The notes: generated from the sequence alone by a model not told the origin. Shown: positions 1 through 63,900, counted from the first letter of the stretch. The stretch: DNA of 64,000 nt from Phaeosaccion multiseriatum (GCA_965112735.1 OZ218956.1:1798001-1862000), one strand, 5' to 3'. Made by a program: numbers and translations.

Positions 1-1600
1 TGGGAACAGCAGCAGCAGCAGCAGCAGCAGCAGCAGCAGGGCTACTTCAGCAGTGGCCGGGAGGGGTGGGGGGGACAGAGCAGGCGCTCCCTGGGGCCCC
101 TCGGAGCCAGCGAGGAGTAGCGATAGCGACCCTCCTGGCGCTGCGGTGCGCCACCTCGGCTCTCCTCAAAGCCGGAGAGGAGGTCCCAGCCGAGCAGCAT
201 TAGCAGGAGGAGGAGGAGGAGGAGGAGGAGGAGGAGGAGGAGGAGGAGGAGTGACAGCAGCGACGGACCCTTCGTCTCCCGTTAAGGTCAAAGCGTCGAG
301 GGGTAGAGCAGCAACAGCAGCAGGAGGAGCAGGACTGGGCGGCGGTGGTGGTGGTGCTCCGAAGCTCAAGGTCAAGACCACAGTAGCCTTCGGAGTAACC
401 TCGCCGGCAAAGGCCGCTCAAGGGCCGCCTGCCCTCGCAGTGGATGGAGGGACTGCGTTCGTTAGGGATGGGCGCACTGTGCTACTGCCGGTGCTTCAGG
501 GAATCGCTTGGGGGTCGCGCAGCGAGCCTCTGTTGGCAACAACACCACCAACAGTACCAACAACAACAGCAACAACAGCAACCACAACGACAGCGGGGAG
601 TCGGGATTGCGAGCAGCCGCAGCAGCAGCAGCAGCAGCAGCAGCAGCAAGCCCATGAGCCCGACGGCGACAACGGAGTGCTGCTCACGTCCAGCAGCATG
701 GCGAGTACCGAATCGCAGGATTGCCCACCGACGTCAAGCCTCCTCACTACGCTCCACGACGAAGGGGGTCACAGCGTGTGCAGTTACGCCTCGACCGACG
801 CGAGCTTGCGCCTCGCTGGGGCAACAGCAGCGGCGGTAGGAGGCCAGCTAGAGGGCCCCGCACTCTCTCCTCCCCCGTGCTATTCACCAGCAGCAGGAGC
901 AGTAGCAGGAGCGGTGCCAGCAGCAGCAACTGTCGATCACTTTGCGAGCCCCGTGGATCTGCTGACTCACCCCCCCGGCGGGCCGTGCTTTGACCTTTCG
1001 GGAGGAGGCTCCCTTGCTGCCGCGGCATCGTCCGTGGCCTCAAGTGAATTCGGAGCGAACGGTAGTGATTTCGGAGATGATGCGGTTGATGATGCTGAGG
1101 GGGTGCCGCGACGCGGGCAGCAGGGGCAGGAGCACGAGCGGCCGCAACAGGAGGAGCAGGAGGAGGAGGAGAAGGGGGAGCAGAAGGGGCAGGAGGGAGA
1201 GAAGGGGGAAGAGGGGCAGCGGGAGGGGGAGGAGGAACTTCTTCTCCGCGTGCAATCTGCTGCTACTGTGGACACCGACGGTTGGGAGGAGCGGGAAGGG
1301 CAAGTGTGGAGGGAGGAAGGGCAGCATCAACAACAACAACAACACCAACAACAGCAGCAGCAGTTGGTGATACAGCCAGAGAGTGGTGAGACAATGCTAC
1401 AGGTCACCGTGCTGATGGACGAGGCCGACGAGAGCGAGTACAGGGAGGGGGAAGGGTCCCCGCTGCCGTCGGAGCAGCAGCTCCAGCAAGGGGAGGAGGA
1501 GGAGGAGGAGGAGGAGGAGGAGGAGGAGGAGGAGGAGGAGAAGGAGGAGAAGGAGGAGGAGGAGGAGGAGGAGGAGGAGGAGGAGGAGGAGGAGGAGTAG
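1..1600 (+). CDS. 3' part of an unidentified gene; low-complexity Gly/Gln/Glu/Ala-rich region, 5'-truncated by the window
   Basis: Frame is open from position 2 to TAG at 1598-1600. Homopeptide style matches coding exons elsewhere in the window. No recognisable domain. Confidence 0.5.
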   Translation, partial: GNSSSSSSSSSSRATSAVAGRGGGDRAGAPWGPSEPARSSDSDPPGAAVRHLGSPQSRRGGPSRAALAGGGGGGGGGGGGGGGVTAATDPSSPVKVKASRGRAATAAGGAGLGGGGGGAPKLKVKTTVAFGVTSPAKAAQGPPALAVDGGTAFVRDGRTVLLPVLQGIAWGSRSEPLLATTPPTVPTTTATTATTTTAGSRDCEQPQQQQQQQQQQAHEPDGDNGVLLTSSSMASTESQDCPPTSSLLTTLHDEGGHSVCSYASTDASLRLAGATAAAVGGQLEGPALSPPPCYSPAAGAVAGAVPAAATVDHFASPVDLLTHPPGGPCFDLSGGGSLAAAASSVASSEFGANGSDFGDDAVDDAEGVPRRGQQGQEHERPQQEEQEEEEKGEQKGQEGEKGEEGQREGEEELLLRVQSAATVDTDGWEEREGQVWREEGQHQQQQQHQQQQQQLVIQPESGETMLQVTVLMDEADESEYREGEGSPLPSEQQLQQGEEEEEEEEEEEEEEEEKEEKEEEEEEEEEEEEEEE

Positions 1601-1737
1601 GAGTAGGAGGAGTAGGAGGAGGAGGGGGAGGAGGAGAGGAGGAGGAGGAGGAGGAGGAGGGGGAGGAGGAGGAGGAGGAGGAGGAGGAGGAGGAGGAGGA
1701 GGAGGAGGAGGAGGAGGAGGAGGAGGAGGAGGAGGGG
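1493..1737 (+). repeat. (GAG)n microsatellite spanning the stop codon of the first ORF
   Basis: About 245 bp of GAG/GGA repeats with three in-register TAG variants. Confidence 0.95.
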
Positions 1738-2129
1738 ATGGGGGAGAAGAAGGACGAAGATGAAGAAGTAAGTGAAGAAGAAGGCGGGGAGGAGGGGCAG
1801 GATGAAGGGAGGAAGGCTCTTGCATGGCACGCAGTTTCGTTCAATATCAAAACTTTTTCTGTTGCTGCTCAAAAGCAACCAAGGTTCATGAACTGGCGAG
1901 GTTCAAGTGTCAGTGTGTAAATGTCAGTGGGAAAGCACCTAAAAAAGCGTCTCTTCCCTATGCTCCGTCGGCTATGAGGCGAAAGCGATGAGACTAGACA
2001 CAGCAGGAAAGAGGAGGTAGACAAGATTCCTCATCTTCTCATCCTCTCTCCTCTCCCCGTCAGTCAGCACAGGAGAGAGACAAAATTCTCATCGTGTCAT
2101 CCTGTTCTCTCCTCTCCTCGTGCCGTTAG

Positions 2130-60651: not shown

Positions 60652-60977
60652 GCAATGCAAATGCAATGCAGTGCATCGGCCCCCCGCGAGGTTTCTCTGG
60701 CCCCCGATAAGCAGAAGCCAGCGGCGGCCTACGCCGAAAGCTGACAAGTCAGGGCTGCTGCCTGGGCTGCGAGCCTGCAGACCCGAAATGCTGAATGTCA
60801 TTGAAAATCGATCTCTTCGATTTTCCTTCATCGCTTGCGAGGCAAAATCATCTTGGGGGAAAAGCAAAAGATGAAAGGGCAGCAGAGCCACATCCTGTAG
60901 CCATAGTCTTGTTAGTTCCTTACAGTCTCTTCCTTCCGATTTCCTGGACGCTACAAATGACTTCCTGACTCTTCTTG

Positions 60978-63900
60978 ATGGTGCCCGTTGGCTCAATGAG
61001 AGAGGACGAGATGGCGACGAGGGAAGGGATTGCCTGTGCAAACGCGGCTGAGACACAGCAGAGGGACGCCTCGATCAAGCAGCGGTCTCTCCACCGAAGC
61101 TCAGGCAGGAGCAGCAGCGCCAGTAGCACCAGAAGCAATGGCCAGATCAGCGGCAAGAGCGCAAGCCGGATCAGCGAGCCCCTCCGGCCGTGCAGCCCCG
61201 GCTGTATGAGAATCGTCTCCTGGAACGTTAATGGACTGCGCAGTGTGGCTGGAGAGGGAGGATTCGGGTCCCTGCAAGCGCTTTTGGAGGTTAGTGCCGC
61301 ATGCCTGCCTGTTGTCTTTTCCCTCATCCCCGTGGCAATTTGCGATGCCCCCGCTCTAAAGCGGAAGGCTCTCCATATTTTTATTAAGCTACCTGAGTGT
61401 AAGGAGCATTTAGTAAAGGAGGTGGTGGTGCTGTCATGGGTGCGTAATGAAATGTGTGTATCGTCAGACGGGCGGATGGATTGCCTGGCATGGCACGAAG
61501 GGCGACAGCTTCCACGGGCCTTTTATGGGCTGGAGCGTCTCGTCTCCTTTTGGAGCAAAGGATGGCTGCACACCACGGCTGTCAATAGAATGGACTAGCA
61601 ACTGCCTCGACGCTTTAACACCCCTTCCCTCGTCGTCCTTCTCATTCTTCGTCCTCTTTCGCTTCGGTTGTGGCCTCTTTTGCTCGCGCCCACCTCTCCC
61701 TCGCACTCACCCAGCACTTGGATGCTGACATTGCATGCTTTCAAGAGACCAAAATAACGCGCCAGGCGATTGACGATAGACTCGCCAGGTGAGGCATTTG
61801 AAAGCGGCGTCGGGTAAGCCCTTGGGACATGATGCTTTGGAACTGCGACGCTGTTTTTCCGACTGGGCTGCTCTCCCTCTCTCTCTCTCTCTCTCTCTCT
61901 CTGTGCTTCTGCTGCTTGGCTTGTACGGGTCCTGTGTGTGAGAGTGTGTAAGGTGTGACTAGCTTGAGCGCGACTGAACTCGGCCTCCTTTCACTCGACA
62001 GGGTCCCCGGATACCATGCCTTCTTTAGCTTCTGCCAGCTAGAGACGCACAAGCACTACAGCGGCGTCGTGACCTTTGTTCGAGCGAGAAAGGCGCCCGT
62101 AGCTTCATTGGCAAGAGGGGGAACAAGAGGAGGAGGAGGAGGAGGAGGAGGAGGAGGAGGAGGAGGAGGAGGGATAGAACCAGGAGCAGCAGCAGCAGCA
62201 GCAGCAGCAGGAGGAGGAGGAGGTGCAATAGCAGAAGCAGCAGCAAGTCCCTCTCGCAGTCGGGTGGTGTGGTCCATATGCCCGCCTGCCCGTGCCGCAG
62301 CGACCAGCTTTCTGGACGGAGCCTTCTTTGGGGAAGAGGTGGGTAATAGTATTAGATTGGACATATCCCCTCCTCTCCCCCTCCATCGCTTGCTACTCGC
62401 TCTGTGCTTTTGTGTTGCTTCGCCGTCTCCTCTCTGGGGTAGTGTTGTAGAACCCTGTTGGACTGGGGCGTCCCTTTGAGCCGACGTCTCCGCAAGCAAG
62501 TGTTGCACTTGTCCGTCACGATGCTCACCCCCCCCCCCCCACCTCTCCCCCCCCCCCCACCACACACACACATCCCACGCGCGTCCTCTCTCCTCCCCCC
62601 GTAGGCCCTTCCTGAGCACCTAACTGCGGCGAGGGTTCAAGAGCTAGATAAGGAAGGCAGAATGGTCGCCACAGGTAAGACGCGCGAACAATTGGGCACT
62701 GTCGATGCCTCTCCCCACAGTCGGGAAAGGGCGTTGTACATTAGCACCAAGAACGCTCCCTGGGCAGCTGTCTAACGCTCTCTGGGCAGCTGTCTAACGC
62801 TCTCTTTAGACTCTCCCTGTTTCCCGCTCTCTCTTTTGTGTCTGTGTGTGCTTTCTCTCTCGCGATCTCTCTCTGTCTGTCTGTCTGTCTGTCTGTCTGT
62901 CTGACTCCGTCTTTCTCCCCCCCCTCCTCTCTCTGTGCGGCTGTCACCCACCCGCCCGCCCCCCCCCCCCTTGCCATCAACAACTATCATTTGGCTTGAC
63001 CCCTCTGTCCTCCCCCCCCCTTCACTTCAGACCACGGCGACTTTGTCCTCATCAACGTGTACTCTCCGTGCGTGGGATGCGGCGACGAGGAGCGAGAGGA
63101 AGAGAGAGCCGAGTTTAAGCTGGACTTCCAGGTACTTCCCCTGCAGGGGGGTGGGGGGTTCCTTGTAAACAACCGAGACGCCGTTGCTCGTCCAAGGAAG
63201 CTCGGATGGTCAAAGAGTGTGGTACTGCAGAGCTCCTGGACTTGACTTACCCCTCCTCCCCCTCTTGCAGACTCATTCGTTACGTACGGTCCTTCCTTCA
63301 GCCAAAACGCAACCTCCCGCCTCCATCGACACGAATACAAGCACAAACACGAACAAAAACGTCATTCGAGTGACCACTGCTGCTGCTGCTGCTGCTGCTG
63401 CTGCTGCTGCTGCTGCTGTATCACCAACTGCTGTTGCTCCTACCTTGTCCCAGGCCATTCTCGGTGCTCGGATTCGCAACCTCAGACGGAGAGGGCGTCA
63501 AGTGGTGCTGCTTGGGGACCTCAATGCATGCCCAACTGCTCAGGTACGCCCCGTGGATGCGGCCCGGGTAGAGTGGGTGGTTAGAGTGAGTCCCAAACAA
63601 GGATAGGACAGAACACATGAGCCAATGTCATAAGGCTTTCCTTCGTGGAGGTAGGAGTCACCTTCTTCCTCTTCCTCTCCCTCGCCTTCTTTCTCCCCAC
63701 TTGTCTCCTTCCCCTCCTTGTCTCTCTCTGTCGGGCATCTCCCGATCTGCTACGACCCATCCTCTACCTCTACTGCCCTGGACCTGTGCCAGGCGAATAG
63801 AAGGCTGCCAAGCAACACGATTCATGTTACAACCCGAGCCTACATCCCCACCCACACCACTTCTCACCCACCTGATGATGATCTGTGGCCGACCTTTCGC

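Follow-up and report, generated by a model that had tools for sequence, protein, structure and literature searches.

The window analysed here is a 64,000-nucleotide (nt) stretch of the Phaeosaccion multiseriatum genome (GCA_965112735.1, OZ218956.1:1798001-1862000; G000:C7:1798001-1862000 in an assembly of 67.1 Mb on 22 contigs). Its genes, which include those for a TPR-repeat protein, a myotubularin-related protein and a 1070-residue PPR protein, are dotted with copies of one short word, the 15-mer CAGTTGGTGATACAG, built around the 9-nt core TTGGTGATA. The 15-mer was found 8 times exactly in the window and never in 100 shuffles that preserved dinucleotides, while the core was found 15 times (shuffle mean 0.17, maximum 2). 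Allowing for decay, 9 further copies contained one mismatch, 5 contained two and 1 contained three, giving the 23 copies listed here. The counts of a preliminary description of this DNA (8 exact copies, 9 with one mismatch, 15 cores) were thus reproduced.

1361..1375, plus strand: exact copy, QLVIQ in a 532-codon open frame
2361..2375, minus strand: decayed copy with 3 mismatches, last member of a tandem cluster
2385..2399, minus strand: copy with 2 mismatches, in the tandem cluster shared with 2361
2424..2438, minus strand: copy with 1 mismatch, QLVIQ
3208..3222, minus strand: exact copy, QLVIQ
4913..4927, minus strand: copy with 1 mismatch, VGDT in a 772-codon open frame
14039..14053, plus strand: copy with 2 mismatches, GTGGTA subfamily
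19094..19108, plus strand: exact copy in low-complexity, probably non-coding DNA
25829..25843, plus strand: exact copy ahead of (CAG)9, QLVIQ in the TPR-repeat protein
26216..26230, plus strand: copy with 1 mismatch, LLVIQ in the same TPR-repeat protein
27402..27416, minus strand: copy with 1 mismatch behind a GAG repeat, VGDT frame
34260..34274, minus strand: copy with 1 mismatch at the end of a CAG tract
36064..36078, plus strand: copy with 1 mismatch, QLVIQ in a linker of the myotubularin-related protein
36181..36195, plus strand: exact copy within a CAG tract, QLVIQ in the same myotubularin-related protein
37442..37456, minus strand: first twin of the double variant CAGTTTGTGGTACAG, next to a T-run, no adjoining CAG tract
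39207..39221, plus strand: second twin of CAGTTTGTGGTACAG, behind a CAG/CAA run in a probable exon
41468..41482, minus strand: exact copy, QLVIQ in the open reading frame of the 1070-residue PPR protein
43159..43173, minus strand: exact copy, no adjoining CAG tract, VGDT in the same PPR reading frame
43405..43419, minus strand: GTGGTA-subfamily copy, VGGT in the same PPR reading frame
48852..48866, minus strand: intergenic copy with 1 mismatch, beside (CTG)9
49071..49085, plus strand: intergenic copy with 2 mismatches; with 48852 it makes an inverted pair limited to 15 nt
55392..55406, minus strand: copy with 1 mismatch, outside long reading frames
63416..63430, minus strand: exact copy ahead of a long CAG tract, outside long reading frames

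Two of the host genes, those for the TPR-repeat protein (24980-26512) and the myotubularin-related protein (35266-37209), also encode very long homopolymer runs between their domains (Gly of at least 20 residues, Glu, Gln and Ala).

The preliminary description had proposed a genome-wide count as a check, and this count revealed a strong excess. The exact 15-mer was present 3,840 times, about equally on the two strands (1932 + 1908), while its reversed sequence, used as the control in the genome-wide counts, was absent. The core was present 9,080 times (control 85), and the 15-mer at up to 2 mismatches 13,454 times (control 64). In principle, such a word could be created at CAG repeats by errors in sequencing, in base-calling or in polishing. 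When the 31-mers of window positions 1-6000, a segment with six word copies, were looked up in five sequencing runs from two samples and two studies, a fraction of 0.44 to 0.94 was present. Moreover, copies within reading frames keep the frame open, the variants of the word form dispersed subfamilies, and the word also occurs without an adjoining repeat; an artefact is therefore scarcely credible.

Within genes the word was read in several frames. QLVIQ was encoded at 1361, 2424, 3208, 25829, 26216, 36064, 36181 and 41468, and VGDT or VGGT at 4913, 27402, 43159 and 43405, where the surrounding stop-free spans range from 158 to 1092 codons. These are the two readings that had been described before, to which an antisense reading, AVSPTA, found in real genes outside the window, must be added: in the WW-domain reading frame at L009:5082-9248 (minus strand) there are five AVSPTA readings beside a single QLVIQ and a single VGDT. 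The three frames are those in which CAG/CTG repeats encode Gln or Ala, and the word was present in 11 of 30 Gln-frame CAG tracts compared with 0 of 7 Ser-frame tracts (small numbers). The frame of the word that contains TGA was never used in long open frames. Of the Ile codons in long reading frames just 14% are ATA, and of the Leu codons just 11% are TTG, yet no synonymous variation was observed within the word despite its use of these minor codons. Copies also lie outside long reading frames (48852, 49071, 55392 and 63416 in the window), including a 3′ intergenic region (48852, 49071) and introns. A selected QLVIQ peptide motif is at odds with the three readings within one protein, the fixed minor codons and the non-coding copies, and the earlier claim that conservation acts on DNA rather than on peptide holds on the same grounds.

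The surroundings of the word were analyzed using the window and a further 200 kb of contig 1 (L001-L020), in which 71 exact cores were studied. The sequence logo reads AG-CAG-TTGGTGATA-CAG-CAG, its information fading gradually beyond about -6 and +14, and a three-nt NNG period extends for 45 nt on either side. Among 105 copies, no pair had a common non-repeat flank beyond the word, and neither a truncation gradient nor a terminal structure was detected, the upstream side showing only CAG-like periodicity. These observations establish the word as a real DNA-level repeat of ~15-18 nt, of the form [AG]CAG-TTGGTGATA-CAG, that has no body.

The word is locked to the strand and phase of simple repeats. 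It was carried, within 30 nt, by 26 of 103 CAG tracts of at least 4 units, and its orientation was forward in every case (26:0). The purine-rich strand of the surroundings was the strand of the word in 80 of 105 copies. Nevertheless, the preliminary description, which placed the copies mostly in or next to CAG repeats, was only partly right: about one third touch a CAG tract of at least 4 units, most are flanked by only 0-2 perfect CAG units per side and some by none. CAG is thus not required, and GAG repeats, (AGGG)n repeats and intron starts also serve as hosts.

Copies were also clustered. A quarter of all gaps between neighbours were 120 nt or shorter, compared with 5% expected; such close pairs shared a strand in 27 of 29 cases, and in 23 of 27 their spacing was a multiple of 3, as anticipated for the frame-neutral element that had been proposed, whereas for pairs more than 120 nt apart the strand was random. 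One stretch (L012:7295-7492) holds ~9 copies at 18-21-nt spacing in a 1032-codon open frame; each is decayed differently, and together they encode a repeated xLVIQ-like peptide.

These flanks bear on whether the copies are remnants of something larger, either excision footprints of a CAG-targeting DNA transposon or the 3′ ends of an extremely 5′-truncated retroelement, as had been suggested. A simple repeat, (CAG)n or (AGGG)n, often lies behind the word, and some long interspersed nuclear elements (LINEs) have simple-repeat tails. However, the word is followed at different sites by different repeats (CAG, GAG or AGGG) or by none, many copies are tailless (e.g. window 37442 and 43159), and repeat units were as frequent upstream as downstream. 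None of the 105 copies extended into common upstream sequence, even though truncation points should vary, and the stretches of the sample rich in transposable elements were without copies. With no common flank, flanking triplets that do not co-vary and a word that is not palindromic, we consider an origin from transposon footprints or retroelement tails very unlikely.

A second setting for the word was found at the beginning of introns. Eighty cores were located exactly 3 nt behind GTRAGT, accounting for 80 of the 143 found at gaps of 0-15 nt, compared with ~3 expected by our estimate. The consensus of these intron starts is GTGAGTG[T/A]G-TTGGTGATAC[A/G]G followed by (AGGG)n, and the corresponding 32-mer has 56 copies at up to 2 mismatches. 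At twelve loci the 5′ splice site was preceded by ordinary exons of unrelated genes, and 13 introns at L022-L033 had in common only the first 21 nt and (AGGG)n, their remainder being unrelated. In introns the word sits between the splice-site consensus and (AGGG)n, just as it sits between CAG units in exons. In many introns, seen around position 1501 of each of L022-L033, a purine-rich (AGGG)n or (GTGA)n repeat comes directly behind the 5′ splice site, and towards the 3′ end stands its complement, (CCCT)n or (TCAC)n, so that the two ends of such an intron RNA could pair; at the twelve loci above, (CCCT)n was often present near the 3′ end. Approximately 99% of cores are not at intron starts.

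The sharply preferred place 3 nt behind the 5′ splice-site hexamer of 80 introns raises the question of whether the word is a functional cis-signal, that is, a DNA or RNA site for a chromatin, recombination, replication or splicing factor that is maintained by selection, with copying only creating the sites. Conservation is uneven across the word and exact copies are in excess (3,840 of the 13,454 at up to 2 mismatches); furthermore, G|GTGAT within the word resembles the local 5′ splice site GTGAGT, and CAGTTG fits CNGTTR, which we take to be a Myb-type site. Against this, the word occurs on either strand of genes, making an RNA signal unlikely, and no common position is apparent across disordered linkers, introns, untranslated regions and spacers. 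The 26:0 orientation lock to the repeat strand is unexpected for a binding site, selection alone cannot yield the private variants of neighbours or the subfamilies described below, and a binding or recombination signal, also put forward in the preliminary description, would still require a copying process. We therefore regard selection for a cis-signal as an improbable explanation.

Copies of the word inherit variants. Among the 32 one-mismatch copies the TTGGTG part was nearly invariant (1 variant), and most variation was held by positions 10, 14 and 15. In 264 kb, 13 copies were of the variant GTTGGTGGTAC. A double variant, GTTGGTGCTACG, was counted 130 times in the genome (control 6), which is ~1% of all copies, on at least 13 of the 22 contigs among the matches listed; by hand count, ~30 of the first 100 listed lie no more than 10 kb from another member of their subfamily, in some pairs on the opposite strand. 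For another double variant, CAGTTTGTGGTACAG, the 67 Mb contain just two exact copies, both within the window: one on the minus strand at 37442 and one on the plus strand at 39207, separated by 1.77 kb. These twins have unrelated flanks and only 17 nt in common, and we estimate the chance of two random family sites being so close at ~1 in 10,000. They are the strongest single result for local copying. Across the whole sample, a variant core was common to 11 of 68 near pairs compared with 78 of 1457 far pairs (permutation p = 0.017). Taken together, the twins and the sharing between near pairs indicate that any copy can donate, that proximity helps and that the transferred unit is ~15-17 nt.

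The same variants could point to an ultra-short non-autonomous mobile element, inserted at AG/CAG sites by a dedicated transposase, recombinase or small-template reverse transcriptase. Subfamilies with linked diagnostic changes over many contigs resemble transposon subfamilies, the CAGTTTGTGGTACAG twins resemble local hopping, and the near-invariant TTGGTG fits an enzyme recognition site. Such an element would be the smallest transposable unit known, and we know of no enzyme that mobilises 15 nt. The word has no terminal inverted repeats and is neither palindromic nor self-complementary, and its edges fade gradually. Its left and right triplets vary independently (GAG..CAG, CCG..CAG, CAG..CAA, CAG..CGG), unlike those of a target duplication, and no longer partner element ending in the word was found in ~300 kb. 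We doubt, therefore, that a dedicated enzyme is responsible. Neither does a telomerase-like addition from a fixed template, which had also been proposed, fit well, as the variants are themselves copied, and locally so.

A whole unit of the word distinguishes recent paralogues within one tandem cluster. This cluster (G000:C1:609000-780000; L035-L040) consists of ~15-17 units, ~6-25 kb apart, which differ greatly in the lengths of (CCT)n, (AC)n and (CCCT)n and each of which contains several non-coding word copies. The word lies at fixed places in every unit and so predates the duplications, and the cluster was rejected as a master source. When five units were aligned, L039 and L040 were found to have 18 extra nt (GGG + core + CAGCAG) relative to L036-L038. 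An 8-nt direct repeat, TACAGCAG, whose sequence belongs to the word itself, bounds the extra stretch, and directly ahead of this stretch stands an older decayed copy in which 9 of 12 positions agree with the word. Had a plain tandem duplication taken place, the decayed neighbour would have been reproduced; the extra unit is a perfect word instead. In formal terms the 18 nt could be 10 nt of insert plus a target duplication of 8 nt, as the mobile element considered above would leave.

Several other sources were considered and rejected. The sole inverted pair of the window, at 48852 and 49071 (48854/49069), is not a hairpin or a miniature inverted-repeat transposable element (MITE), being two separate copies with 15 nt in common and 200 nt of unrelated sequence between them. 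A 46-bp minisatellite (L001:6736-7264, ~12 units, with GGGTTGGTGATACAG in each) is present at a single place only. The word resembles the canonical ACAGAGA region of U6 snRNA, but the U6 of this genome does not contain it: the sole U6 gene scored (L034:1501-1609, 59 bits) has ACAAAACAGAGAAG at this box, where most eukaryotic U6 presumably have GATACAGAGAAG. No tRNA-like gene was found with the word as its acceptor stem, only head-to-head word pairs, so a tRNA 3′ end or primer-binding site was discarded as well. A scan of the whole window against Rfam returned no match.

The PPR reading frame of the window reached at best 31% identity in protein databases, to an Ectocarpus protein, with no close relative, and an exact-protein look-up gave no match. 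In the published literature the word on both strands matched primers only, and no description of spreading microsatellite interruptions was found. A metagenome scan with a 21-mer gave one isolated match, judged to be due to chance, on a contig without a second copy.

The genome contains a second hyper-abundant word, CCATCCACTGCCATCC, with 4,401 copies that match exactly, none for its reversed control, and 51 at up to 1 mismatch in 264 kb, including those at 17488-17592 (plus) and 28687-28886 (minus) of the window. It equals 1.6 units of a 10-nt unit that also builds arrays (C1:265060-265205), and it is located mostly in the C-rich 3′ parts of introns, just ahead of CAG 3′ splice sites. CCATCCACTGCCATCC may be a second member of the same class. 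The other frequent 11-mers of the sample stem from a 75-81-bp satellite within a multi-copy element (L004:4456-5166, elsewhere in L004-L005, and in L013-L017), which is an ordinary repeat and not a dispersed word.

Our preferred explanation, to which we give an even chance, is that the word has no body and that copies already present act as templates for new ones, through short-patch templated repair, or ectopic gene conversion, from one simple repeat to another, while selection removes the copies that place a stop in frame. The process would begin with a break or stalled fork within a simple repeat rich in purines; in exons such a repeat is (CAG)n or (GAG)n, and at the beginning of introns it is (AGGG)n. 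From the break, a 3′ end would pair through a handful of bases (AG, CAG or longer) with a second repeat of this kind, near or far, copy a short stretch across the word and return via the repeat units on the far side. A process of this type could be short-patch ectopic gene conversion by synthesis-dependent strand annealing (SDSA), or microhomology-mediated template switching by Pol-theta or by break-induced replication that relies on microhomology (MMBIR). The genome has three A-family polymerase loci, which may or may not include Pol-theta. With repeat units bracketing the word, every copy would prime its own transfer and be a ready donor, and variants would be inherited. Slippage would later lengthen or shrink the flanking repeat faster than point mutation alters the word, which may be why exact copies are found with little repeat left. 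Selection would remove copies with TGA in frame, so that survivors in genes read QLVIQ, VGDT or antisense VSPT. The drive may be that interrupted repeats are more stable, so that pure tracts break and are converted more often. We infer the enzymes, the breaks and the drive of this process from the pattern that the copies have left.

Templated copying is favoured because the edges fade, there is no body, the strand is locked to that of the repeat, variants are inherited, nearby donors on either strand are preferred, one indel comprises a whole unit and has a direct repeat, and the word occurs wherever it is flanked on either side by dispersed homology. Templated repair also predicts that variants of the donor are transmitted and that nearby donors are preferred, and both were observed. 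Spread by gene conversion or break repair among CAG tracts was another candidate of the preliminary description, and it gains from the subfamilies, the CAGTTTGTGGTACAG twins, the fading edges and the indel with its 8-nt repeat, although the hosts are not CAG tracts only.

Some observations weigh against templated copying. Neither a break nor a donor-recipient pair nor an enzyme was observed. The 18-nt indel may be a gain or a loss, as a diverged unit in the sample, taken as an outgroup, gave no alignment at this site. A general repair process should amplify many interruptions, yet only one other hyper-abundant short word was found, and the model may therefore miss something specific to the word. 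The near-invariance of TTGGTG, together with the variability of positions 10, 14 and 15, could mean that a functional core is selected. Finally, many exact copies have no adjoining repeat and need either a microhomology of 2-3 nt or later loss of the repeat.

We tentatively suggest that the word might represent a new class of eukaryotic selfish DNA: a replicator of 15-18 nt without genes, termini or body, which would travel as a passenger of break repair and be driven by its stabilising effect on interrupted repeats, leaving as by-products QLVIQ, VGDT or VSPT in disordered regions of thousands of proteins and dozens of marked intron starts. If so, the minimum size of a sequence that multiplies in a eukaryotic genome would fall by almost an order of magnitude, and ordinary break repair between microsatellites would itself be the copying engine. 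The word would then provide a natural genome-wide record of thousands of repeat-repair events, including the donors chosen and the lengths of the patches. It explains one source of recurrent short peptides in unrelated proteins. For annotation of this genome the word should be masked, since it misleads both homology searches and gene models.

Several known systems resemble the word in part: among processes, templated repair insertions and ectopic gene conversion come nearest, among objects MITEs and short interspersed nuclear elements (SINEs), and by statistics bacterial words such as HIP1 or DUS. HIP1 of cyanobacteria, the DNA uptake sequences (DUS/USS), Chi and the repetitive extragenic palindromic (REP) sequences are prokaryotic words, some of them palindromic or tied to uptake or RecBCD. 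Like these, the word is fixed, short and far above chance, and runs through coding sequence in several frames; unlike these, it is locked to simple repeats, and to our knowledge none of them has locally shared private variants. The CAG and CGG tracts associated with disease contain stabilising single-codon interruptions (CAA, CAT, AGG) that have arisen in place. The word is likewise an in-phase non-repeat insert within CAG tracts, and the drive proposed above was suggested because interrupted tracts of the disease type break less often; in contrast to such interruptions, however, its 9 nt are common to thousands of unrelated loci.

The smallest known mobile elements of eukaryotes, MITEs and SINEs, are typically 70-600 bp long and carry either inverted ends or a promoter for Pol III, together with target duplications. 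The word is similarly dispersed, high in copy number, divided into subfamilies and present inside genes and introns, but it measures 15-18 nt and lacks termini, target duplication and body. We know of no eukaryotic repeat this small that has subfamilies and local copying.

Introner elements, known from Micromonas, Aureococcus and Pelagomonas (10.1101/2021.10.25.465678; PMC11282704), repeat the intron in its entirety. Similarly, ~80 introns of unrelated genes here open with the same 21 nt. Unlike introners, these share no more than splice site, word and simple repeat, the rest of each intron being unrelated, and the word-bearing introns are therefore not introners. Templated repair insertions consist of 5-30-nt stretches copied from elsewhere, in either orientation, often from near donors and with microhomology at the junctions (e.g. 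PMC4490562, PMC8421209). The twin pair, the 8-nt direct repeat and the fading edges of the word would fit such insertions and ectopic gene conversion. Whereas templated insertions are one-off scars of arbitrary sequence, this is one word with ~13,000 copies and inherited subfamilies, in the manner of a replicator.

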